A DNA stretch of 63,825 nt, the filler included, from Ministeria vibrans ATCC 50519 (lineage: Eukaryota > Protista > Filasterea), in assembly GCA_943704425.1 (NCBI GenBank). It is 7 parts of 7 records of this genome, joined end to end, with 100 filler letters (N's around TTAATTAATTAA, not from the genome) between each part and the next. Parts side by side here need not be neighbours in the genome. Positions count along the whole stretch, not along the records: positions 3,734 to 23,308 come from CALSCP010002288.1; 6 more parts are not named here. The stretch is one strand, 5' to 3'. The notes below the pieces were generated by a model, which was given only the letters and a program-made list of their open reading frames with translations, was not told the DNA's origin and did no database searches. Position 1 is the first letter of the stretch. Each line of letters opens with the position of its first letter. Made by a program: the position numbers and the translations under genes. Positions 3,734 to 21,488 of the stretch are shown here, in pieces.

Positions 3734-5241
3734 AATAGCGTAACCGTCTGATTCGCTTCCTCCCGCTCTGCCGCTGCACGAGCGCGCTTTGCCATCTCTC
3801 GCGTGCTGACTCCCATCCCAGTGCCAGTGCTTGCGGGCTCCATCCGAGCCAGAGCACCACTTGCTCGCCCGCTCTCCAATGTCACCCTCAAAGCTGGGTT
3901 GGCTCGAGCCTCAGACTCATCTTCGTTGCGCGCTATGGGCTCACCCAACTTCTCTTCCATCTCGCCCTCCTCCTTGCTTGTCACGTCTTTCGCTTCACCC
4001 ACCACATGCGCAGCCCGCACATTCTCTGCCTTCTGCTGACGCTCGCTTGCCTCGCCGTAATCCGGTTCGTCCACCTCCATCACATCCCGCACCTGTACTA
4101 TTCCAGATGATGGCTGGTATGGTGTGCGTGTCGACGCGCTGGTCAGATTCACCTCCGACGCAGTCGCCAATACCAGGCCGCTCGTGGCTCCACGGTCGCC
4201 CTCAGCCTCGTCCGCATTCATCGCGCCCTGGGCCGTCCCAGCCTGCACTTGCGCTCTGTTTGGTGGCGGTTTGTCGTCGACTGGAATTTCCATGCGTGTC
4301 GACGCCTCAGTTGCTCCCCCGTCGCGCTCGGCGTCATCCGCACCCATCGCGACTGACTTTTTCTTCACTGGAGGTGCCGTGGTAACCGCGCATTCCTTCT
4401 TCTCGCCTTGCTGTCGCTCTTTTCGCTCGTTGCCGCGCCTCTTCCCTGACATCTTGCGACGTCCCGACTTGCTCGGCCGCATTTCCATTGACTGCACCAC
4501 CGGCTTCGGGTGGCGGTTCTTTCCCGCGTCCACCACCACCACCGACACTTCCAGAGGCTCCTTGTGATGCCAGCGACGGCGTGGGCGTTGCGTCGTGCGC
4601 GTCGGGCGCGACGGGCTGCGCGAAAAGCTGTGCGTCGGGTCGAGCGACAATTTCTCATCTTGCTGCTATCGTAGGAGCACCGCTGACCAACCTCCGTCCG
4701 AGTTTGGAATGTTGGTGACCCAGACATTGTTGTCGTGAACGTTGCCTGAGTGGTGACGTAGCTCGTTGGCGCTCTGGGGCAGGAAGTGGAGCGCGCGCTT
4801 GTCGCCGTTCCACTTTACTGAGACAAATTGCCGCTGTCCGGCGCCCCTCAGTGCCTCAGCGTACGACGGCTCACGGGTCGAGTGGCACACGTCCAAGGCC
4901 TGCAGCTGGGCCTTGATCGCGGCGGTCACCTCAACGCGTTTCAGGGATTCGGAATGAAAGACTTCAAACTGCATTGAGAGGTCCGCATATTTGAAAATCG
5001 ATCGTCCGATGGTCAACCCTCAGCGGCCGATATGGCTCATCATCGCGTCCACACGGTCCGAACGCACCGTGACTACCACTCCGGGGCGCGCGTCGGCCAG
5101 CACGCGGACCGGAACCGGCGCAATGGGGCTCTCGGATGACCGCTGCACGTCGACCCTCGTTCCCACAGATATCACGTCACCCGCCGCAGAGCCGAGGCCC
5201 TCCTTCACCAGCGCAGTTAGAGCTGCCTTCCCGGGAGGCAT
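3734..5241 (-). mobile_element. Decayed intronless ORF, candidate ORF1/gag-like gene of a non-LTR retroelement; runs off the contig end
   Basis: Three ORF-track pieces (5241-5020, 5016-4666, 4650 onward) share one frame, separated only by TGA (5022-5020) and TAG (4668-4666). No introns over 1.5 kb. Has a PSYAEAL motif and a low-complexity charged C-terminal part, and starts about 160 nt from a TTAGGG tract. No RT or endonuclease is visible. Confidence 0.4.
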
Positions 5242-5759: not shown

Positions 5760-8700
5760 TCAAATAGCGACGCGATGCGCTTTGTTGCTTGGGAGCACAG
5801 TCTGGCCACCAGTGAACAGGGACAATATCTGCTCATTCTGGTTCATGAGGGTACGGTTGTCCTGCATGAGTGTGTGGTTGACAGTGCGCTGCTTGGCACT
5901 CTGGTGACGCACAACCAAAGCCAGAACGCAGGCAAGCACAATCATCGTACACACAATGAGCAGAGTATGGTCACCCGACGCCAACATGCTCAACATGCCA
6001 CCACCCGCACCTGCACCAGTAGCGATACGCGACATCTGAATGCGCACAGGCACAGCCGCGTTCACACGCGACAGCCACTCCATCTGCGCCGCAGCTGAGT
6101 GCGTGCCATTCGCTGCAAACGCTTTGTCATACAGACGCGTCAGCAGAGCTGCAGTACTCGCCTCATGTGCTCCAGAAGTCGCATCAATTGACACAGAAAT
6201 TGTCGGGAAGCCGGTCACAGCATTGACACTGTCCACACTCACATGCACACGACCCGCGTCCACCTTGAGCAACTCGATGAGCTCACTCGTGACGGCCACT
6301 GCGCACCGCTGCTCAGCATGCTCCTCTGTCTCACCCACCCCACGCACCAGACGACGCTGTAGCGCTACCTGCGTCACCGATGCACGTACCGTCGACAATG
6401 TCACATCCGTCATGACGTACCACCAGTGCTGGCTCGCCTCAATCATGTTGCCGGCCTTGTCCTTGATACCCAACACCGTCATCTTCACTGCTGCACCTTC
6501 AATGTCGTTCCATGGCACCGACAGACCAAACTCAACCGAGATAGTGCGTCCCGAGCACACCGCCAGAAGTTCATTGATGCCCTTAGAGGACCAGGTGAAC
6601 GGCGAGGTGTTCATCGTCGCCTCAGCCTTCACCGTGAACCCGTACGGCGCACGGCAGTCCAGCTCCTCGTCAAACGTGATGCTCACAGTCGAGCCAGGTG
6701 AGTACACTCCCGACGCAGGCTGGGCAAAGTGGCCAAACACACGCGGTGACTGACGGTCCGCCACACCCCTAATCACCTTGGAGAACTTCTCGTTGATGCC
6801 CTCCGGCGGGTCCGTCATGCTCGCCGCCTTGCAAATGCAGTGCAGTCGCAGTTCGTACCCACCGTCAGGCAGTGTGGATACGTCCCAGTACGCGGTCGAA
6901 TACCCAAACACTGAAGCCAGCGACGTGAGACCACCCTCTTCGGGGAAGGCCTCTGCCTCGTCCACCATGACCATGATGGCCTTCCTCCAGGTCGTTGTGC
7001 TCAATGCGCGGTACTCCAGGTCCACACTCACCAGTCGCTCCGTCTCACCCGTCGTCCACGGCTGCTCCACCACATTCTTGTTCGCTGCCACCACACGCAC
7101 CTGGTCCTTGTGCTTGCCCGCAAAGTCACCATCCTCGCGTGTCGCACGGTTGATCGTGAATTTCGCCTCCTCAAACAGATCACCCGCAAACTCGACAGGT
7201 GGACACGGCTCAAGAAACTCGACGGGAATATCAAGGGTGGTGCCCGTGGCGTCGTAGCCGTTCTTGAGCACACGGTCCGAAGCAAAGGTGCGCTCGCAGT
7301 CCGACACCCATTGGAGCCGGAATGGGGGGTATTTGTACGTACCAGGCGCACGCCAGATCTGCAAATCAATGCGAATGCTGCCCGCGACAAAGTTCAAGAG
7401 ACTCAGCTCAGTAATGAGGGTGTCACCATCAATAATAGGCACCAAGTTCAGAGTGTTGTGGTCCGAAGGCATCACCAGACGGTAATCAGACATGTCGCCG
7501 GTCGGCGAGTCGTTGATCAACATCAATTGGAACATGGCAGGCTCATCGGGCAGCGCAGGCCTCGACGGCCACGATACAAGCATCATGCGTGCACTCTCAC
7601 GACGCACTGTGTTGTCCTCATGAATGCACATCGAGCGTCCGCTCAGCGTGAAGAACACGGGTGTGTTGAACATGGGGTCATAGAATATCTAAGTGAGTAT
7701 GACATCAGAATTCTCTTAGGGTTAGGGTTAGGGTTAGGGTTAGATGAGTGTTTATTATATACCAGCACGTCAAACTGGTCGCCAACCTCGGGATCGCCAA
7801 GGCTAAAGGATATCTCGTGCGCATCACTGCTCGACCCAGTCTCCGAGTCACCATGTGAAACCTTCACGGCGGACGAAATGGTCAGACCACCCTCGATACC
7901 AGCGCCAAAATTCATCGTAAAGCCCAACTTTAGCGATGGAATTGTGATGGTGTGGTCCCACGCCTCCGTGTTGGTACCACTACTCGACGCACCACCACCA
8001 ATACCGTATGAAAAGTCCGCGCCGCCACCCGAGAAGCTAACTCCGTTGAAGGTGTTCATGTCGGCTTCGGCGCCACGACGCCACTTGATCAACTCCTCCT
8101 CAGTCCACTCCTGCGGTTTCGCGCCAGCCCGGTCGGCCCACTCCTCCGGCACCAATGCTGGCTTCTTCGTGTACGCCTCCGCTTGGTCGCCGTTAAACTT
8201 TTTCACGCCACTCTGCAACTTGAGCGAGTTGATGGGCGGCAAAGCATACTTGGACGAGCCGTACAGGCCCTTATTCTTGTCCTTCCACTTCTTGATCATC
8301 GCAGCGTACACAGCCACATTGTCCTTGTACGAGTTGACTGCGTTGACACCCTCGCCAAGCTGTGCGGCCGTGAAGAGCGCGTCAATGTTTACTGCACTCG
8401 AATCGGTTGACGGTGCAAACGACGCTGATGGATCCACTTTCAATTCCTCGTCAAAGTCCGTCCACGTGTTAGTCTTCTGACCCACCACATGATGCACTGC
8501 GCCGTTGTACGCGAGAATGTTGATCCAGCCATTGATGGCATTGGTAAGACGCTTCTTCGTGTCAACCGGACCAGACTTCTCAATCTCATGGTTGAGCTGC
8601 TCCAGCAGGTCGGGAAGTTGGCGGTAGCGCAGGTCGTCTTCACTCTTCCACGCCATCACCTGGTCACCTTCGGGGTCGACCACAACGACGGGCTCCGCCT

Positions 8701-11700
8701 CCATTTCACACAAGTTCGGATTGAATTTGATGTTGAGTGAGCGTGTGAGCTTCACCGACAGTGCCGGCACTAGGAACATGTCGGACGCACGTCCGGCCGT
8801 TCCCAGGTTGTTACTCGTCGACACGGAGTACGTTATGGACAGCTCGCGCGATTTCTCCCAGTTACCCGACGGCAGGGACTCAGTTCGATCAAACGAGTAG
8901 CCGAGCGAGGTGCCCTTGACATTCAAACTTTTGTCTGCCTTCTTTTGTGCATCAATTGCCGTTTGCATTTGACCTGTGTAGTCTTGCATGCGCGAACTGC
9001 CGTGACCACGCTGTGCACGCTCGTTCGCGTCCTCGTTGGCCACATCACTCTTGGTAGCCCACTGCGCATCGCGCCGACCGATCGCAGCCAATGTCTTCAG
9101 ATCGAATCCGTTCTTACACACCATAAACCCGAGACCCACGCAGAGCATCATGTCGTTCTTGGTGGCCAGGGCTATATCCGCTTGGACACCCAGTCCGGCA
9201 CCAACTGTCTTCGACTCGCCCCATGTCCATGCCACTGATTTGCCAGCGCCAACTGTCGTCGAGCTATCACCGCCTGGAGGGTCGCGCACAATCATCAGAG
9301 GCAAGTACTCGGGCAGTTGCAGTGAGAAGAACGCACTCAGCTCAACCTGACCCACAATGGCAACGTCCACCTCAACGTGGTTGACGCTGTTCAGAGTGTC
9401 CCAACCAGGCACCTTCAGAGTCACATAGATGGGACGGGTGTAGGGTGCCTCGGCCGACATGACTGCCGCGTTGCGCTCCGGTTTAGCAGTCTCGCCTTCG
9501 ACAACCACCATAGGAGGTAGCTCGTCCGACGGCAACGGAGTGTTGCCAATGCTCTTGGCAATCGTCAGTCTGGCCATACAGCCCGGATAGCGACCACACA
9601 GATTCACCAAGACGGGCGCTTCCGCTTGTGCCTCGGCCCCCGCCGCGTTCACAGGCATCGCATTGCCCGTAATGTCACGCTTTGTCACCGTCACCGATGT
9701 GGTCGTAGCCACAGTGTTGACAATGCGAAGGGCACCCTCAACAAAGTGGCACACTTCTTCGGCGTTGTCGCCATACACCTCCTTCGCAGTGATCGAAAAC
9801 TTGGCCGTGGCGGGGCTCACTTTCACGCCATCACCGAGAATGGTAGGAAATGTACGACCCTTGGCAACACACGCGTCCGCCGAAGCAGCCCCATTTAATT
9901 GCTCGGCCATTTCAACCAAAATCTGAGGACGTGTGTGGAACTCGTAGCGAATTTCTCGCTCGTGATCCCCCTTGGCAGCCTCGGCAAGCGCCGCCTCGGC
10001 CACCGCAGCGTCAGCCTTGGACTTTTGCGCTACGTCGGCCTTGACGGGCACATCCTTGTCGCACAGCTTCTGCTGGTGCGACGACAGCTTGGGCAGACTG
10101 CCGCCCTCCTCCTCCTTCTTGAGACCCTTTGCCACGTCCCCCTCATCTTTCTTCTCGTCAAATAGACGGAGGTCCATCTTGGAGTACGTGCGAGTCTGGA
10201 TGCGATCCAGATACGGCGCCACTTCGGGTCGCTCGTACACCTTGTTCATCACCACGTCAAAGAGCGTTGCGGGCAGCAGGTGCGTGTCCACCGCCGCCGT
10301 TTGGATCACTGTGAGGAACACACCAGCCACGTCACACTCGAACCGCGGCAGCAGTCGAATCTCAGCCGTGCCCAGGTTAATGTTGCATTGAGGTGGACCA
10401 CCCGCCACCGTAATCGTGAGCTCCTTCATTGTCTCATCAAGGAAGTTGACACTGTTGAGGCCCTTTTCCGGAATGAGAACAAACGACGACTTGCTGGTCG
10501 GCGTGTTGGTACACAATGGCGATCGTTCGTTCTTGACGGCGTCTTTGGGTGACACGTCTGCCGACTGGAACGCCAGTACGTGCATGCCAAACGTCGCAAC
10601 CAACTCGACATTGAGACCAATCGGAATCTCCATGAGATAGGTTCCCTTGTCCGACGTTGTCGCACAAAGTACCTGGGCACCCGTGTACCAGTCGTAGGCG
10701 CACACCTCCGCATCGGGCACCACACATTTGGCTTTGGGACTGACTATGGGTGTGGGCGGCTCGTGCCAGCACAGACGTGACGTCTTGTCCGTACCGTGCA
10801 CATATTCGCTGCTGCAAGCCGTGATAGACTCCTCTTTGTCATAGACAACCTCAAATACCTCTGACCCAACTGTCTTCCACAGACTGCAAGTATTCGCCTT
10901 CCTCACATACCTCCACCAGCTGCAGCCAACGGCCATAGCGCACTTTTCCGCACACTCGAGCGTAGTCATGCCATAGTACTTGGCAAGCACACCCGACGCG
11001 ACGTAGCGGTACGTCGTGTGACGATGCACATATGACTGCGAACACAGCACACCCGTGCGGCCCGGAGGGCACTCGGGTTTGACACCTGACCCCGCAGTAG
11101 CCGGTGAACTGCGGCTCGCCACAATGCCCGACGTGGCATGTCCACCAATCCCATCGTCAAAGAGCACCTTGTCGCTCGAGCCAGCGCCAAACGACGTGCC
11201 CCTGAACAGCGAGCAGATGGTTGAGCGGTGAGTCCACGACGAACACTGATCCGCTATCTCGCACAGGAGCTCGCACGTGTTGGCCTTGAGAGTCAATGCA
11301 TCCGAAAACATCTTGCCAGGTGCCTTGATCGTCCCTCGCGCAATCTCATGCACAATCTGGTCAGTGCGTCCTTGCTCGCACCACGTCTTGCGCACGGTAT
11401 AGGCGGCGGCTGGCAGCGCCACATATTGATCCTGGAGCCACCGACGACTGCATGCCGACTGCGACCCATTATGCAAAACCAGTTTCACAACCGCATTCTG
11501 GCCGTCCACTGTCCACTTGTCCGCGTCTGCCGTCAAGAAGTGCTGACACCTCTCCTCGAGCCCACTGCCAAAATCCTGCAAGAACGACCAGCCCATGCAA
11601 GTCGCGCTCTTGTCGCAGCGGCTCGAGCACGACTCTGCCGAGTCCACCCCCGGAAGGACAATCGCACTGTCAAGGTTCCACGAGAACCCTTCACGGAGCA

Positions 11701-14700
11701 GCGACAGTTCACAACTAGCGCCACCCGTGCCGAATCCACACGGCGTCTGAGTGCACGCCAGTCCGCCAATGCGCTGGCTACACGCTGAGACGTGCGGCGA
11801 CAGCGAGCACTCACCCGGCTCGTACACACCCGCGCCGGCCGGGTAGTAGCACGCCGTCGTCTTGGTCATCGTCACCACACCAATTGAAAACGCCACAATG
11901 TCAAACACACCAGCCTGAGCCGTAACAGTCGAGATGCTGCTCCAGAGCGCTCCGTCCGACAGGGCACCATAAAATGCAGTGGAGGTCGCCACAAACTTGG
12001 TGAGTTCGCCAGGCGCACTCGCCGTCAGACCACTGGCTCCCCACACACGCGTGATGCTATCCTCGCAGACAGCAGCAAATCCAAGTGGGTGCGCATGAAT
12101 GAGCTCAACACCCTTGGTCAATTGCACTTCCAGCGTGCCCATATCACCACCTAGACTACCGCTGCCCCACGAGACGACACCACCGTTCTCGTTGAGTGCC
12201 GCAAAAGCACCCTTCGACGCATGCAGCGACACAACGCCCACCAGGAGAGAGTTCTTTTTGGAGGCGGGCACCTCACCACCGTGCGCAGCACTACCCCACA
12301 CAAACACCCGTCCGTCGTCACGCAACGCTGCAAACGCACCGCGAGTCGCCGCCACATCGACAATGCGCTCGCTGAGGAAACCCTTGAGATAAGAAGGAAC
12401 CTCATTGCCATCACCCGCAACACTAAATGTCACAACCTGGCCAGAGAGGTGGAGAGCACAAAAGGCGCCAGATGTCGCAACAACCTTGCGGTAACCCGAA
12501 TGTGGGACGGCGTCTTCAATTGGGAAGATGATCCCACGGCGATTGCGGCTGTGGACCGTCTCTGTGTCAACGTTGCGCGAGAAAAGACCATCGTGAGGAA
12601 TCCTAGCGACGGTGGCACGTTGCTCAGGCTCTTCGGTGTCACGACGGCCCCATCCTCCCCACAGACTCGGTCGAGAGCACGTCACGCCCGAATAGTTCGG
12701 CGGACAAGTGCAAGTGAACCGACCTATTTTTCCTTCGCGGCATCCGCCACCGTTTCGGCACGGGCTGCTGGAACATTCGTCGAGGTTGTTCGCACACGTA
12801 GGACCGTTGAATCCGAAATCGCAGTTACAGAAGTGGCCGTTCACTTGATCAAAACATGTCCCGGTCGAGGCACAGGGGTTGGGCGAGCAGTCATCGATGT
12901 TGGTCTGACACAGTGAACCGGTATACCCAACGACACAGCCACATGTGAACATGTTAATGCCGTCATGGCAGGTCCCGCCGTTCTTGCATGGGAACGACGC
13001 ACACTCGTTGATGTTGGTCGCGCAATGAGCTCCAGCGTAGCCCGCAAGACAGTTGCACTTGTATCCGTTGACTTGGTCGACACACGTATCACCCGACTGG
13101 CACGGGTTACTCGCACACTCGTTGATGTTCGTCTCGCACAAGTCACCAGTGTAGCCAGTGATACAGGTGCACACAAACCTATTAACCAGATCGGCACACG
13201 TACCGCCGTTCTGACACGGCGACGACACACACTCAACGTACTCTTCGCAGTGTGTTCCCGAGAACCCATAAACACACTGGCACTCATATTTGTTGACAAG
13301 GTCATTGCACGTCGCACCATTCTTGCAAGGATTCGAGGAACACTCTAGCAGCTCAGAGGCACATGTGATACCGGTGTATCCAGGTGTACAGTAACATTTG
13401 AAAATAGCGAATCCGTCGAAGCACGCCGCGCCATGCTTGCACGGATTCGAGGCACACTCGTTGACGTCATTGCCACAGCGGGCGCCCTTCCATCCTGAAG
13501 CACAATCGCACACAAAACCGTTAAGATAATCGTAACAGGTGCCACCATTCAGGCAGGGGTTCGACGCGCAATCGTCGATGTTTGTTTCGCAATGCATGCC
13601 GGTGTGGCCGGCACCACAGTCGCATGCGTACGAGCCGTGGCTGTCAACGCACGTGCCACCATTGACACACGGTGCCTTCCGGCACTCGTCAATATTGCGC
13701 TCGCACAGGTTCCCTTCGAACCCAGTCGAACAGAAACAGTTAAAGGCGTTGGGAGTCGACAAGACGGCACACGAGCCGCCGTTCTGGCATGGCAGACTCG
13801 TGCACTCGTCGGTCCCGTCCACGTTCCAGATGTACGGCGCTCCCGACGAAGTGAGTGCCACAAACGACTCGTCAGTTGTGGTGACGTGCACCACATCGGA
13901 GTAGAGGGTGAGGTCCTTTTTAAATGAACCACCCGACTGCTTGATGACGAGCACCTGATTGACACCGGTCGTGTCGATGAGGACCACGTAGTACTCTTTG
14001 CCCAGGAACACACCAAGGATGCTGGTTGTGGCGGATCCCGGCACACTCGATGCCAACGAACCCCACGACTGGAAGCCTCCGTCGCTGAACACTGCGACGC
14101 TGTAGTCGTAACGTGGGTCTGAAAAGAGCGCAGTCGCATCGTTGGCTAGGTTCACTTTGGAGATAGCACCTGCGGTATTGACACGGTGTACGTCTCCGTT
14201 GAGGCTGAGGATGTTGCCAAATGCAGTGTTGGCTGAAATCGACGAGACGCTATGCGTCACGGCAGCGTTGCGTGCGGTTGTTGAAAGACGTGACCCGGCG
14301 TATGAACTGATCGTCGCCAGGCGCTGGAAGGCCGGCACTGCGTCCGTCTTCTGCAAGTAGCACTTGGACTGTTTCACGTCAAACGTCCATGCCTTGCACG
14401 TCTCGTCAAAGTCACACTTCTCCGCACAGGCATCCAACGTGGTCGCGCTGGCGACAAGCGTCGACGCCTCAAGTGCAACTGAATCGGCGTGAGTCGTGCT
14501 CTTGGACGGCTCCTGTACACACATGGCGTCGCCGTACAGCTGGTAGCCAAAGGCACTGCAGCCCGAGGTGACACCGGTGCGCTGCCAAAAGGGCACAGTT
14601 GTGGCAGCTGACGGGACTGTCGCAATGGTGTAGCAGGTATTGGCACGGTAAGACCAACCAACACACGAGCGCGCCATCGATTCGCACTTGGCCTCACACG

Positions 14701-17607
14701 TCTTCCACGACACTGATTGCGCAGCGCTTGTAGACGCGAGCAGCGCTGTCGTCATGAGGCTTGGCTCGGCATTCTCATGGTACACCTTGGCGTTGCAACG
14801 GTCACCGGCGTAGCCCGGAGCGCATCGCTGGCACTCGATGGGATGGCTCGCCCACGACGGGGTTGAGCAGCCAGACTCGGCCTTAGAGGTACGTGTCGCG
14901 CTTCCTTGCCACGACGCCGTCGAGAACAGAGCGCAGGGGTAGCCCTTGGGAAAGCACGAGGGGCAGTAGGACCACGCGGTGCATTCGCTCGTTGCTTTGG
15001 CACACAAGTCGGAACACGCTGCGGCTGAGGCGGCCGGTGCGCGCAGGTTGGCGTCGGTGGCCGGCGTAAAAGACGTCTTGAGCAGCGTGTGCGGTGTGGT
15101 GCAGCTCGGGGAGTCGGTGAAGCCCGGCGGACACGCCGCCTTGAGCCCACAGAACGCGGCGTGTCGTTTGTCCGCGGCAAAGATGCGCGAGCAGCCGGAT
15201 TCAACGCCCGCCTCGTACACAATGCCACCCGAGTGGGTCCACACAGCGTCGCGCTGCACAAGACAAGCGCCGCCAACGGGGTAGCTCCAGGCAGTGCACG
15301 TCGCCGTGTTGTCACAGAGTGTGGCACACGCCTCGGCACTCGCGGCCACCACAGTTGTGGTGGCCGTCGACCCGGAGTACGTTGTGTTCTTATGCATTGT
15401 GCGTGTCGCACACTGCACTCCCGTCCAGCCAGGCAGACAGCCCTTTTGCGCACACGCGGTCGGCGACCGAGCATCTGAACAACCCGACTGCGATCCCTCC
15501 GAGAACTCCGATCGGTACTCGTCACCGACCTGCAGGCGACAACGGTAGCCAGCAACCACGCCCTTGGCCAGGTAGGTCCAACCAAAGCAGTTGACAATGC
15601 CGTCACACTCGGTTTGGCACGCAGCCACATCAGCTGCGTCGCTCGTCACAAACAGGTCACCGACAAACGCCGTGTCTGCATGCGGGGTCACTTTGCTGCG
15701 ACGCATCTCGGGTTTTACCTCGAGCAACTCGACTGGAACTGCATCACGCTTCGCCAGTGTCTTGGCGGCGCTGTTCTGCACAAAAGACTCGGTATGCGGC
15801 ATGGCATGGAACGCATGAGTGACGCCCTCGCCGAGCGTCGTGGGCCAGGGTGCGTCTGCGCTGTAGACACGATCGGCAGTCGATGCATCACGGCGTGCCT
15901 GTGAAGTAATGTTGTCTTCCGACGCGCCAACACGCATGGGAATCTGCACCATGCCCCGCACAGGCGCAGTGGTTGCGTCGTAGAACGTAAGCGTGTGAGT
16001 AAAGTCGAGGTGCTCCATTTCGATCAGGCGGGTGCTGCAGAATTGGCCATCCTTGCACTTGAAGATGTGGTCGATGCCTTGTGTGTTCTTGCTGACTGTG
16101 ATGTGCACGATATACTTGGAGCTCAGGAGACAAGGGTTGTTGACATGGAAGACTGTAAGACCAACCACGTCGGTAAGTTTGTTCGCCTCGCCCTTGCTCG
16201 TCGTTGCTCCGTTGCAGACTGCCGTCTTAATCTCCCATTTGACTTTTACGTCTTCGACTGGTCGCCCACCACGCACCGTCACCACTTCAACGCTGAGTTT
16301 GGAGTCAAAGTGCACGGTCCACGGAACGCGACTGTGAAGTAAAACAGATCCAATTAGATTAGAAAAGAGTGTTTCGAAATGAAGTTAGTTGCTACCTCTC
16401 TTTGGACTGGTAGTGCAAGACAGCGTTGCCACCAAAAACAGTGTAGTAGTAGGTGGATCCAAGAACAAGTTGACTGCCAACAAGGTCATCAGTGATGTCC
16501 GCGGGGGCAATGGGGTCGGCGCACGAGCTCTGGGGCAGCTCGAGTGTGTTGGAAAAGCGCAACAGAGGTCCTGTTAGGCTCTCCTGGCGAGTGAGCTCGT
16601 AGTCGGTAGCGCACAACGAGTTGATGGTCCACGAGAAGTAGATTTTGCCGCCTTCTTGACGGACAACAAAGTTCGTAGGGGAGTCTTGAACTGGGGAAGA
16701 ATCGTGTCAGGAAGGGATGTTCGGCAGTGTCGATACGTACTCTCTTCGGGGGCCAGTCTTCCCTGGTAGTCGGGGTTGGATGAGTTGCACAGGCGCGACT
16801 GTGTGCTGCAGCCACACGGCATCGTCAACAGAAGCTAACAGATAGACAGTACAAGTGAAGTGAGTGGAATAAAAAACAAGCCTGCATATTGGTTTTATTT
16901 TGGTAGCTCTCGTACGTAGACAGAGCTCTTAAAGTAAACATCGAATTGATCGCCGGCGCCCACGGCACCCTGAATGATGCCGAGTGTTGCAGCGGAAGCG
17001 CCGCCAATATTGAGGGCCTTGGCATCGGAGGAGGACTGGCGCTCAACGTGAGCGCCTGAAACCTTTGGGATTACCTTCCAGTCGCCACTCACCGAAGCGG
17101 TAAGCGTGCCAATAACAGCATTCTGTTCGCACTGGAAATGCAGTATCATGGGATGGCAGCCCACTGCGCTGAAAGTGTTATCCTTGCAAATGCACGCCTT
17201 GCGGTCGGGCGACGGACTCAAAGTGAGGGTTTTGTGGCAGTTGAAGCAAATCTGAAACGTAATAACAAATAAATTGATTTATTACAATAATAATAATAAT
17301 AATAATAATTCCATAAGAATTATATCTTCTCATTATCATTTCTTGTTTTTGTCATGATCGGTATACCTTTGAACCCTTTTGGGGCTGGTACATGTCTACA
17401 GTACCACAAAAAGCAACATTAGTACAGGTGTAGTTTCAACTCTGACGCGACGGTCGCACATGGCGTACTGTCGGGGCACTCTGTGCAGGTACGCAGGGGT
17501 CGAGACCATTTGGAAGACCGAAAGGAATACCTTCCGGCGATACAGTCTTTGCACTTTGACTGGCCTTTCTTATCCTGATACTTTCCGCTGCCACATAAGA
17601 CGGGGGT
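5760..17607 (-). CDS. Giant membrane-anchored cell-surface protein (>3,500 aa): Cys-rich GCC2/3-like unit, 8 PAN/Apple-like modules, RCC1-like repeats, 10 Notch-type EGF repeats, RDPPG module, Ig-like region and C-terminal TM helix. True first exon or signal peptide not found.
   Basis: Exon 16331-7763 is joined by the 74-nt GT-AG intron 7762-7689 to exon 7688-5760, restoring ...GDQFDVL/IFYDPMFNTPVFFTLSGRSMC. PAN pattern C-x3-C-x(5-6)-C-x2-W occurs 8 times; EGF repeats at 13813-12677; FAALRDDGRVFVWG-type repeats; TM LLIVCTMIVLACVLALVV. Smaller upstream exons reach 17607. Confidence 0.85.
7716..7743 (+). repeat. Interstitial telomeric repeat (TTAGGG)4.7 inside the 74-nt intron of the giant gene
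   Basis: ttagggttagggttagggttagggttag. Confidence 0.95.
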
Positions 17608-17647: not shown

Positions 17648-17815
<168 letters not shown>

Positions 17816-17849
17816 AGAGGGAGAAACAAAATGTACGTGTGATTCGTAC

Positions 17850-20206
17850 AGGTGCGCGCAAGAGATGGGAGAGAGAGCCAAGACGGAAACGCTCACGGTC
17901 CTCCATGCTGATAGACAAGGACGGCGCAGGCTTTTCTGAGAGTAGCAGCTTCTTTGCATGATCATACAACGGAGTGCCTAATAAAAACAGTATTAGTTTC
18001 AGTATGATTTTTTTAACTGGCTCTCTCTCTTAATGTTTCCTCTCATTCTTCTCATTCCATAATGACGCTCTTTCACTCTCTTCTCTCACTCTCGTCGCTA
18101 CATACCTTTAGTGCCTTGAAGAAGAAGGGCGCGCAAAAACCGAGCGCGGTCGCGAATGTCGTAGTTGAGATCGTACTTGGCGACATTGAGCACATACTGG
18201 AACAGCATTTTCGTCTGCTTCTTGTTCGTCATGTACAGCTTGGCGCCCAGATTGAGAACCTACGAAATAGGCCAGTGTTTGTTGCGACGGGGTTGATGGT
18301 TTGTTCTCGTTAAGCGTGTGCGTGCGTACCTGCAACTTGACAATGTCTTCCTCGGTGGCAAATGACTTGCAGGTGACCCGCAGCACGTCCGGCGCAACTT
18401 TGGGCACACGCGCCGAGTACTCGCCAATAAGCCACAGGATCGACGCACGAGCCATCGGCACAGCAATCTAAGCATAATAATAATATTAATAATTATTAAT
18501 ATTAGTAATAAAATAATATTATTAGATCATACCTTGTCGAGAGACTTTGCAAGGGACGCAATCATATCATCGTGTTCAGTGGGGCGCAGCTGGAGCAGTT
18601 TCTTGATGATGACAACGGCCTCGGCAACAATGTCTTCATTGCGGTTGTGCACCAGTGCCATTAGACCCGACAGGCAGTTCTCCGTCACTACAGTACATTA
18701 ATTTTGGCAAAAAATGAATTTACAATCATCTTGGTTTCGCTGCACCCACGACTCATATGGGTCTTTGAAGATTTTCACATTCAATCCCATACAAATTGTT
18801 TCCCGTTAATACATTCTCTTTGTCACTGCTCACTCTCATGTCTATCCCATTTTCAAAAATACAACTCCATACGATTTTCACCTTCAATCTCTCCCATTTC
18901 ATACACACACACATGCACCCACACACACACTTTCGATCTCATGCGGTTTCTCGTTGATTCATTCTCTCCCACTCTCTCCCATTCACGCTTCTTCTTCATA
19001 CGTACGCACAGAACGATACTCCACACTACTATTGCTTTATGATACCTTCTGGGATGGCGGAAGCACATCGGCCAATGGCCTGGATGGTTGCTGTGGCAAA
19101 TTGCTTGTGCGGCGACAGCACGTACGTCTGGAACTCCTTGAGAATAGTGGAAATGTTCACTTCCGTTGCCACATTCGTCATCACCTGAAAGAAAATGACA
19201 CACACACACACAAGCAATTAGTATCCTTTTAATACGCGCACAATTATAGTCACTACGTGTGTGACTTACTTCAATCTTGAGGAGCATGACAAAGAGAGGA
19301 TCAGTGCTCTTGACAAAAAATGACTTGAGGTGGGGCGAGAACATGCCCGGACGACGCGCACTCATAGTCGCAATCGCCTGCAGAATCACATACTGCGTCT
19401 CACGACTGCCACGCAACACTCGTACAAGCGCCTTTCCCACCTGATAAGGCAAAAATGAAAAAGAAAAAAAAAAAGAGAATGTGAGTGGGCGAGCTTCATG
19501 TGCATGATCCATTTGATATACTTGAATCGCCTCGGCACGGGGCGCCAAGTAGTGGAACACCTCAGCGACAGTGAGCACTACACCCGAATTGCGGCTCTGA
19601 AGAAGCGACTGGCACGAGCGCAGCAGAAGACGGTGGTCAGGATCCATCTCATACGCCTTCTTCTTCTACATAGAACAGACAAGAGAGGAAGGAGAAATAA
19701 ACAAAGCGATAGAGAGAGAAAAACAAAGTGATAGAGATAGAGAAGAAAGAAAAAAGAAATGAAAAAGAAAAAAAGTGATCCAGAGACAGCATAATGAGTG
19801 TTACCTTCTTCTTCGATGCGTCTTCGTCATCGCTGTCCTCATCACTGCTACTGCTCTCCTCATCGTCGTCATCCTCATCATCGTCCGAGTAAAAGGCCTT
19901 CTCGGCGTCGTCTGCGTCGTCTGCGTCTGCATTTGGGTTGATAAACTGTGTGCGCGCATAGCGGATCAGCATGTTCAGCACCACCATCTGGCCCCATTCG
20001 TCAATGTCAATCAGCACAGTACACAGCTTCTTGTACTGCAAAATATGGAGAGGGTGTGTCAGACGGGATTGTACGCGCCATCATGGTACGTGTTTGTGGA
20101 TGAGATCAAGGCGGTCCGGGCAAATCTCCTCAAAAGCCATCACTGCACTGCCCAGCACGAGCGTCGACGAGTCCTCCAACAGTTTGCCCAGCAAGTCAAT
20201 CAAGTT
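17850..20206 (-). CDS. AP3B: AP-3 complex beta subunit, internal trunk fragment; N- and C-termini missing
   Basis: [52 protein letters not shown], acidic insert, [53 protein letters not shown]. Confidence 0.93.
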
Positions 20207-20285
20207 CTATAAAATACATGTTCGTTTATTCTTTCTTCTTCCTTTCAATTGTTCTCTATCAAAATAATTGTTTCTTTCTCTCTCT

Positions 20286-20303
20286 CTATCACTTTGTCAC
20301 TTT

Positions 20304-20378
<75 letters not shown>
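20286..20378 (+). repeat. CTATCACTTTGT plus (CT)n microsatellite; probable chimeric junction between AP3B and ABCE1
   Basis: Splice acceptors point outward on both sides, with no first exon in between. Confidence 0.85.
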
Positions 20379-20381
<3 letters not shown>

Positions 20382-20475
20382 ATTATATATATATCTTCCC
20401 CCCCTCTCTATTCTCCCCTCTCTCTCCCTCTGTTTATTTCACTTTGTTTCTATTCTTGGTCTCACTTTTGCTTAG

Positions 20476-21427
20476 GCTCGTTTGAGCTGACCATTGAGGA
20501 AGGTGAGTTTACCGACTCTGAGATTATTGTGATGCTGGGCGAGAATGGCACAGGCAAGACCACCTTCATCCGCATGCTTGCGGGTCTGCTCAAGGTATAC
20601 AACGTTGGCGCTCGAGTCAATGCATCTTTATTCGTTTTTCGTTCTCCTCCTTCTCACACACTCGCACCCCTGTTCTCCGTTTTAGCCCGACTCTGAAGAG
20701 GTCATTCCCGAGCTCAAAGTCAGCTACAAGCCGCAGAAAATCAGTCCCAAGTTTGAGGGCACCGTGCGCCTGCTCTTCCACAAGCGCATTACAAACGCCT
20801 ACACGCATCCACAGTTCGTCTCCGACGTCGTCAAACCGCTCGAAGTTGAGCGCCTTCTCGACCTTACCGTCAAGAATCTTTCTGGTGGCGAACTCCAGCG
20901 TGTCGCCATGTGTCTTTGTCTTGGCACTCCTGCCGACATTTACCTCAGTGCGTATTCCAAAAGGTCGTCTCTCCAATAACTCACACACCTTCGGAATTCT
21001 ATGAACGTAGTTGACGAACCGTCCGCTTACCTTGATGTCGAGCAGCGTATCTCCTGCGCCAAAGTCATCAAGCGGTACGTATCCCCAGTCACAATGACTT
21101 TTTGTCTCTCACACGTTGTACTTAATTCTGACCATTTGCTTCAGATTCATCCTGCACGCCAAGAAGACGGCGTTCATTGTGGAGCACGACTTCATCATGG
21201 CCACGTACCTGGCCGACCGCGTTATCGTCTTTGACGGCCAGCCCGCTATCAAAACGTGCGCGCGCACCCCATGCTCGCTCCTCGGTGGCATGAATATCTT
21301 CCTCAAGAACCTTGACATCACATTCCGCCGCGATCCCACCAACTTCCGCCCCCGCATCAACAAACTCGAATCGGTCAAGGACCGTGAGCAGAAGGTTGCT
21401 GGCAACTACTTTTTCCTGGAGGACTGA
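20476..21427 (+). CDS. ABCE1: ABCE1/Rli1 ribosome-recycling ATPase, second NBD only; 5' half missing
   Basis: [90 protein letters not shown]. Confidence 0.96.
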
Positions 21428-21488
21428 TCCGTTGTAGAGAAGTGTGACTTGCAATGATATGTCTGTGCGCGTGTGTGTGTGTGTGACT

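Follow-up and report, generated by a model that had tools for sequence, protein, structure and literature searches.

Introduction

Domain insertion is a known evolutionary route, and the usual inserts are single domains. In integrin beta, the beta-I domain is inserted in the hybrid domain, which is itself inserted in the PSI domain, and in integrin alpha the I domain is inserted in the propeller. Here we describe a gene of the filasterean Ministeria vibrans ATCC 50519 (assembly GCA_943704425.1) in which about 28 modules sit in a hairpin loop of a beta-sandwich of about 110 residues. The gene lies on the minus strand of a stretch of 63,825 nucleotides joined from seven parts of the assembly; this whole stretch is called the window below, and all positions count along it. 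The gene is genuine, and its product is a surface protein of about 3,800 residues that is anchored in the membrane.

In general terms, the protein resembles an integrin in having a head of loop-inserted domains, an immunoglobulin (Ig)-like leg, one transmembrane helix and a short tail. However, there is no sequence relationship, and each insert of an integrin is one domain of about 200-240 residues, compared with about 28 modules and 1,736 residues here. The modules themselves are of familiar kinds. PAN/apple adhesins of protists, such as apicomplexan microneme proteins and the oomycete CBEL, and Notch-type EGF arrays serve in extracellular binding. They share with this protein the tandem PAN modules and the calcium-binding-type EGF repeats, which are Pfam matches here. 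Their arrays, however, are linear rather than lodged in another domain, and they are without the scaffold that carries the insert in our gene.

That scaffold, named here after its RDPPG motif, has its nearest relatives in two groups of uncharacterised proteins. The first comprises named eukaryotic homologues: Salpingoeca rosetta PTSG_07019, Monosiga brevicollis MONBRDRAFT_11172, MONBRDRAFT_32652 and MONBRDRAFT_33191, Paulinella micropora g76968 and Seminavis robusta Sro689_g187500. They have the same sequence blocks in the same order and, like this protein, are large mosaics with variable adhesion-type domains. Unlike in this gene, their second sandwich is unsplit (a gap of 7-8 residues where measured) and their variable domains (dermatopontin, EGF_CA, Sushi, JmjC, Vps62) are N-terminal. 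The second group comprises unnamed giant cargo proteins of the type IX secretion system (T9SS) in bacteria of the FCB group (Bacteroidota, Calditrichota, Chlorobiota, Fibrobacterota), for example a 2,366-residue frame of Calditrichales OZ254086.1 (L065), one of Saprospiraceae (L046) and one of Aureispira (L033). They share a sandwich of the CarboxypepD_reg type and its strand motifs, the (V)AGG.C domain, PLMILRDPPG, GD.F.V followed by TPVF..G.S.C, Big_5/Ig domains, and binding domains on a long stalk. In contrast to our gene, they are intronless, their sandwich is unsplit (a loop of about 5-10 residues), their LamG_3 heads are N-terminal, and their anchor is a C-terminal T9SS sorting domain rather than a transmembrane helix. 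No PAN, EGF or RCC1 domain was found in the four proteins scanned with Pfam.

Two halves of one beta-sandwich

A stop-free minus-strand frame at 7646-16315 (8,670 nt, 2,890 codons; residue numbers of the long frame refer to it) and a second one of about 1.9 kb at 5760-7688 together hold all of the features listed in an earlier note on this DNA, which was made from the sequence alone. That note had suggested that about 1,700 residues of adhesion modules, between about 15940 and 10735, separate two sequences that look like halves of one beta-sandwich. Both points agreed with our results. The insert comprises 1,736 residues (Table 1), and its flanks correspond to the two halves of one transthyretin-like beta-sandwich, since they are adjacent in the homologues and make up one transthyretin-like domain in the model of an unsplit homologue (P0060).

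In 66 of 76 homologues, the profile of the N-terminal half ends 1-36 residues before that of the C-terminal half. The other ten were N-terminally cut fragments, proteins without a detectable N-terminal half, or a same-species paralogue. In homologues from other organisms, the strand pair preceding the conserved cysteine of the C-terminal half is the pair that sits 1,736 residues upstream here, and the halves are adjacent in bacterial proteins too. Both halves of the motif (HL.FD ... D.T..P..G.V.I and GCP...A.VCL ... TD..G.Y) are present in the gene, 1,736 residues apart. Among the best 150 homologues, none from outside this organism has the insert at this loop; the six paralogues that cover the site all have it.

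The AlphaFold model of the P0060 fragment had a mean predicted local distance difference test score (pLDDT) of 88.8. Its residues 61-172 aligned end to end with a Bacteroides fragment (82 of 82 residues, Z = 9.5, root-mean-square deviation (rmsd) 2.0) and also with the carboxypeptidase D regulatory domain (Z = 8.8), transthyretin and the teneurin TTR domain (overall Z = 8-9.5). The loop corresponding to the insertion site comprises residues 71-87 of P0060 and lies between strands two and three. CarboxypepD_reg (PF13620) matched six of 20 homologue fragments. The sandwich halves of this gene itself gave no match to PF13620 or any other Pfam family at E values up to 1.

Modules of the insert and the order of insertion

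A Pfam scan of the long frame revealed EGF (E = 6.8e-45, nine stretches), PAN_4 (2.3e-21), PAN_1 (1.1e-17) and RCC1-like (1.5e-9) matches. The order along the insert is five PAN modules, about four RCC1-like blades, ten EGF modules, about six further blades and three PAN modules, which makes an array of about 28 modules. Over the whole frame, PAN_4 (PF14295) scored 76 bits against a cut-off of 27 and PAN_1 (PF00024) 64 bits against 21.4. When the eight PAN candidates were scanned singly, a PAN family was the best match for all of them (E = 1e-6 to 0.03), which confirms the five plus three PAN modules of the earlier note. EGF (PF00008) scored 151 bits against a cut-off of 21.5. Our count of ten EGF modules, made by eye on the translation, was the same as that of the note, and seven of the ten carry a calcium-binding-type motif.

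The blades required a revision. Only one RCC1-like repeat had been read before the EGF array, whereas the 146 residues preceding the array aligned with the later blades over 141 columns (hhalign probability 75.6%, E = 2.4e-5), which corresponds to about four blades. Scanned alone, this segment had no Pfam match. The piece after the array matched RCC1_2 (PF13540) at 34.3 bits against a cut-off of 22, and WD40_RLD (PF25390) with E = 6.1e-10 and 38-39 bits, below its cut-off of 150. About ten short blades were counted in total; a propeller of the RCC1-like family is a closed ring of seven.

That the EGF array interrupts the blade series, as had been claimed, is seen from the blades aligning on both sides and from paralogues. 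We surveyed the source assembly (29.7 Mb, 2,860 contigs) and found at least seven paralogues of this family. C833, which is 68% identical, and C1827 have the full architecture of this gene. In C1986 and C2457, the PAN modules and the blades are present and exactly the EGF stretch (841 to 1216 of this gene) is absent. C905 (loci L017, L018 and L025) is also without the EGF array; its cassette in the same loop is of about 2,340 residues and has laminin-type EGF and Fibrinogen_C domains beside the PAN modules and blades. The paralogues were monophyletic in our trees (support 0.997 and 1.0), and the three EGF-bearing genes formed a nested clade (0.957). Because only this nested clade has the EGF array, the simplest history is that the array was gained later, once, within the blade series. 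Thus, two nestings can be demonstrated: the insert in the sandwich loop and the EGF array in the blade series. A third one, a PAN array containing the propeller, had also been proposed. The linear order is as described, while containment by insertion was not demonstrated.

These comparisons show a succession of three steps. In the lineage of this organism, a cassette of PAN modules and RCC1-like blades entered the second sandwich at the loop that joins strands B and C; the gene then multiplied to at least seven paralogues; and the ten-EGF array entered the blade series in one sub-clade. The second insertion lies inside the first, and some paralogues of this genome still represent the intermediate stages. 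Together with the unsplit versions in other eukaryotes and bacteria, they form a natural series for studying how a small fold copes with a very large insert in one of its loops. The same series bears on how surface receptors gain new heads.

It might be argued that this architecture is an artefact of assembly or annotation, or that the gene is a decaying pseudogene. The gene lacks its 5′ end, and truncated genes abut two (CT)n tracts, one at about 17650-17790 and the other at about 20270-20400. However, both sandwich halves and the entire insert lie within the single 8,670-nt frame, and the same layout was found again on further contigs as well as on a metagenome scaffold of independent origin. 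The latter, SCHR19-1_SAMN09406036_METAG-scaffold_317 (L026, ENA ERZ23497376), is 99.4% identical in DNA to C1827 and gives that paralogue full-length with the same architecture; the same organism is present in the sample. Between this gene and C833, the ratio of nonsynonymous to synonymous differences (pN/pS) was 0.2-0.5 in every segment, well below 1, and all segments are under purifying selection. We therefore regard an artefact or a pseudogene as highly improbable. The identity to C833 was 70-80% in the inserted domain segments and 60-66% in the two scaffold segments after the insert.

The scaffold family in eukaryotes and bacteria

The family was defined by a profile of the scaffold of seven paralogues (A1) in an exhaustive profile search. 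This search matched 482 proteins at E ≤ 0.001, 26 of them at E ≤ 1e-30, with a best E of 2.7e-67. A word-index protein search with the scaffold returned only a same-species paralogue. Among 30 matches that were looked up, all named proteins were eukaryotic. They belong to choanoflagellates (Salpingoeca rosetta, S. infusionum, S. kvevrii, Monosiga, Choanoeca and Barroeca), Paulinella micropora and the diatom Seminavis, and two unnamed matches adjoin plainly eukaryotic genes. The collinear blocks of the family are all present in this gene: (V)AGG.CN, P.Y.PL.I.RDPPGG, C.G.G...C, TS.DP..AG..SD.FLVP, FSGGG...GD.FDV and DP...TPVF..G.S.C. They are followed, as in the family, by C-terminal Ig/macroglobulin (MG)-like domains and a membrane anchor.

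The variable domains across the family include dermatopontin, EGF_CA, Sushi, JmjC, Vps62, WSC and RCC1. Binding domains were also found in other loops of the scaffold, a sialic-acid-binding MAR_sialic_bdg domain in P0003 and an F5/8 type C domain in P0029. On the basis of these domain matches, nested binding domains recur in the family. Searches of Pfam, NCBIfam, PDB and the literature gave no entry for the scaffold or for the architecture, and the searched literature makes no mention of the named homologues or of the RDPPG motif in this sense. This is in line with the earlier note, whose author knew of no such protein in descriptions to date.

A link to Bacteroidetes-type proteins with RDPPG had been proposed in the same note. 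We scanned 185,579 species genomes, one per bacterial or archaeal species, for the motif P[LIV][MTS][IV][LV]RDPPG and confirmed 56 bacterial loci, mostly in Saprospiraceae and other Bacteroidota. The hosts included Saprospiraceae, Lewinellaceae, Aureispira, Prevotellaceae, Chitinophagales, Calditrichota, Chlorobiaceae, Fibrobacterota, Marinimicrobia and others, and one Calditrichota locus lies on a complete 4.7-Mb chromosome. Each bacterial homologue is encoded by one frame (about 1,800-4,165 residues), and its match to the scaffold profiles is collinear over the unsplit sandwich, RDPPG, GD.F.V and TPVF..G.S.C. Four of them were scanned with Pfam. LamG_3 heads, CarboxypepD_reg and a T9SS sorting domain were found in all four and Big_5 in three, with PF13620 above its cut-off in L065 only. 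The proposed link was thus confirmed by 56 loci, a collinear scaffold and T9SS proteins. Pfam and NCBIfam scans of the C-terminal frame of our gene found no T9SS sorting domain (Por_Secre_tail, TIGR04183).

The note had further considered the scaffold to be possibly horizontally acquired. The existence of bacterial homologues fits this idea, and since they share the whole scaffold, a recent acquisition by this organism from a Bacteroidota bacterium might be envisaged. However, in a FastTree phylogeny of 364 aligned columns (an earlier mixed tree of 73 columns was discarded), all 40 bacterial sequences formed one clan (0.999) with no eukaryote inside, and the paralogues of this genome fell among the eukaryotes. 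In addition, the gene has spliceosomal introns and a transmembrane anchor instead of a T9SS domain, and its best profile matches are in choanoflagellates and Paulinella. Judged from these sequence comparisons, a recent transfer into this organism appears excluded, and we give such an origin next to no credence. Because the bacterial and eukaryotic members form separate clans, a transfer between bacteria and eukaryotes, if there was any, would have been ancient and may have run in either direction. Since the anchor is the main difference between the bacterial and eukaryotic versions, the family lends itself well to studies of ancient gene exchange between domains of life. The scaffold family newly brought to light here, 482 profile matches and at least 56 bacterial species, was unannotated.

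Proposed function

The order of parts along the protein is an Ephrin-receptor-like repeat, a fibronectin type III (fn3)-like exon, a transthyretin-like sandwich, the split sandwich, the RDPPG module, Ig/MG-like domains, a transmembrane helix and a tail. Taking all the evidence together, we consider it probable that this is a type I membrane protein with a loop-borne head on a conserved stalk, which works as an adhesion or recognition receptor. The stalk consists of the fn3-like module, the two transthyretin-like sandwiches, further sandwiches, the RDPPG module and the Ig/MG-like domains, followed by the transmembrane helix and a short tail. In FCB bacteria the same stalk belongs to a T9SS-secreted surface protein with lectin-type heads, and in many protists it is membrane-anchored with varied heads. 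In M. vibrans, the stalk would hold the head off the membrane, the head may bind to surfaces, prey or other cells through their glycans or proteins, and paralogues with different cassettes might have different specificities. The earlier note had likewise proposed a possible role in prey capture or adhesion.

We infer a cell-surface adhesion or recognition receptor with its head on the loop of the second sandwich because the conserved part seems to act as an anchored stalk and the variable positions hold lectin-like or adhesion modules. Elsewhere in the family, binding domains are likewise loop-borne or N-terminal (dermatopontin, WSC, RCC1 and Sushi, and LamG_3 in bacteria), which is consistent with a display role.

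Three observations weigh against this interpretation. The PAN matches are weak when taken one by one. The signal peptide and the N-terminus are absent from the contig. The model of the RDPPG module had a pLDDT of only 65.7 and showed long hairpins and a helical hairpin with no convincing structural match.

The protein might instead be a structural part of an extracellular coat, scale or matrix, with the stalk and the arrays as building material. EGF and PAN arrays are also found in matrix proteins, and the genome has many frames of 5,000-6,500 residues with Ephrin-receptor-like repeats besides the seven or more paralogues of this family. However, the transmembrane helix and the cytoplasmic tail suit a cell-bound receptor, and lectin-type domains prevail at the variable positions of the family. 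A role in a coat thus seems rather unlikely to us.

Another possibility concerns the RDPPG module (about 330-560 residues), whose blocks are conserved in the 482 proteins and in bacteria and which had no match in Pfam, NCBIfam or PDB sequences. It could be a latent beta-hairpin pore-forming device, in which case the protein would serve as a weapon that attacks on contact, with the nested head aiming it. A language-model search placed this module and a bacterial one with aerolysin and ETX-MTX2 clusters (scores 0.77-0.79). A paralogue model showed hairpins of 17-25 residues with Gly/Ser-rich alternating strands, and pore forms of gasdermin, RCD-1 and perforin appeared as weak structural matches. 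Saprospiraceae and Aureispira, which account for many of the bacterial hosts, include predators. All these signals, however, lie below the reliability marks of the tools (rmsd 10-12 Å, TM-score 0.07-0.09, atlas score below 0.9), and low-confidence models often draw long hairpins. Foldseek and VIA matches on the paralogue model fell on the C-terminal MG-like domain alone. The frames of this gene had no Pfam match to aerolysin (PF01117), ETX-MTX2 (PF03318) or MACPF. The gasdermin, RCD-1 and perforin matches, with rmsd values of 10-44 Å, were discarded as evidence. We hold the pore-forming device to be quite improbable. The same low rating applies to its widest form, a hairpin membrane-insertion device that would make the protein a prey-attack machine passed between domains of life, the module being common to T9SS surface proteins of FCB bacteria, predatory Saprospiraceae among them, and to membrane proteins of protists, both phagotrophic and other.

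Gene model and features of the locus

Returning to the receptor as the preferred interpretation, the features of its gene are listed in Table 1. Database matching and folding were run for each exon; joined frames served only to verify that the frame stays open and, for C2457, also for the tree. The locus has a G+C content of 46-64% and is eukaryotic DNA. All six introns are GT-AG introns of 50-115 nt, five of them within 16332-17468, and the joined exons form an open frame with one terminal stop.

The motifs RDPPGG, GDQFDV and TPVF..GRSMC, the transmembrane helix and the short tail were all present where they had been read. RDPPG...GDQFDV..DP..TPVF had been described as a module; its motifs were confirmed, and in the DNA an intron separates GDQFDV from TPVF. 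This intron is backed by C1986, C2781 and C2457, which read uninterrupted there (...FDVLIFYDP...). It carries (TAACCC)4, a telomere-type repeat. The Ig-like regions noted earlier correspond to an MG-like domain in a paralogue model, of which residues 600-729 (pLDDT above 90) matched HAP2 domain III and the MG domains of complement C3/C4 (Z = 9.4-10.1).

The fn3-like module of exon 5 is 40-79% identical among the paralogues and aligns with the same region of the homologues; a Pfam scan of it found no match. A second GDQFDV motif was observed in exon 3 at about 16930-16950 and is conserved among the paralogues (GEQFGV in C833 and GGQFDV in C2457). It resembles the motif ending the RDPPG module.

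Position 17607 had been taken as the gene edge. It is instead an exon border behind a splice acceptor, beyond which there is a (CT)n tract and, further upstream, a fragment of an adaptin gene. Upstream of the corresponding point, C833 continues with one EGF and at least eight Ephrin-receptor-like repeats. The repeat of exon 1 is thus the final one in an array, the rest of which does not lie on the contig. No other contig of the genome was found to hold the missing 5′ exons.

Table 1. Positions of the features of the gene along the window.
Feature	Position	Strand	Details
Gene model	5760-17607	-	7 exons, 3,796 codons plus stop; 5′ end incomplete
Exons	17469-17607, 17367-17395, 16916-17251, 16741-16834, 16396-16690, 7763-16331, 5760-7688	-	
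Exon 1, one Ephrin-receptor-like Cys-rich repeat	17469-17607	-	Pfam Ephrin_rec_like, E = 1.3e-4
Exon 5, fn3-like module	16396-16690	-	Precedes the scaffold across the whole family
First transthyretin-like/CarboxypepD_reg-like beta-sandwich	16082-16315	-	N-half profile (123 positions) matches 94 family proteins
Split sandwich, strands 1-2	15938-16018	-	End ...FYDATTAPVRGMVQIP
Nested insert	10730-15937	-	1,736 residues, long-frame residues 127-1862
PAN/apple modules 1-5 with small Cys spacers	14252-15703	-	
About four RCC1-like blades before the EGF array	13811-14248	-	hhalign against later blades
Ten tandem EGF modules	12674-13810	-	Long-frame residues 836-1214; Pfam EGF (6.8e-45), hEGF, EGF_TEN
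About six RCC1-like blades after the EGF array	11786-12538	-	RCC1_2, 34.3 bits
PAN/apple modules 6-8	10736-11728	-	
Split sandwich, remaining strands	10568-10729	-	Start KCVVPDAEV...
RDPPG module	7763-9448	-	RDPPGG 9269-9286, Cys loop 9116-9142, TS..AG..SD.FLVP 8753-8830, GDQFDV 7766-7783
Intron inside the RDPPG module	7689-7762	-	74 nt; separates GDQFDV from TPVF
End of the RDPPG module, then Ig/MG-like beta-sandwiches	5967-7688	-	TPVF..GRSMC 7626-7664
Transmembrane helix	5910-5966	-	19 hydrophobic residues, read from the translation
Cytoplasmic tail and stop codon	5760-5909	-	49 residues

The two long (CT)n tracts mentioned above coincide with truncation points of three genes. These are the giant gene, without its 5′ exons; the adaptin gene (minus strand, 17805-20203), which covers only positions 156-522 of the Adaptin_N profile and lacks its N-terminus; and an ABCE1-like ABC gene (plus strand, about 20500-21430), the first half of which is missing. 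It is possible that these sites are chimeric assembly joins or rearrangements at microsatellites.

A 305-codon open frame on the minus strand (3736-4650) reaches the edge of the piece. It has a G+C content of 61% and strong GC and AT skews, and a Pfam scan of it found no match.

Beyond the window, the genome is rich in giant surface proteins, with many frames of 3,500-6,500 residues bearing Ephrin-receptor-like repeats (C2679, C2524, C642, C1352 and others). An intronless gene for a cytosolic HSP70 (L088, contig C2175) encodes a protein at most 74% identical to any named protein, and therefore the organism seems to have no close sequenced relative; an identical protein was found in ENA metagenomes.

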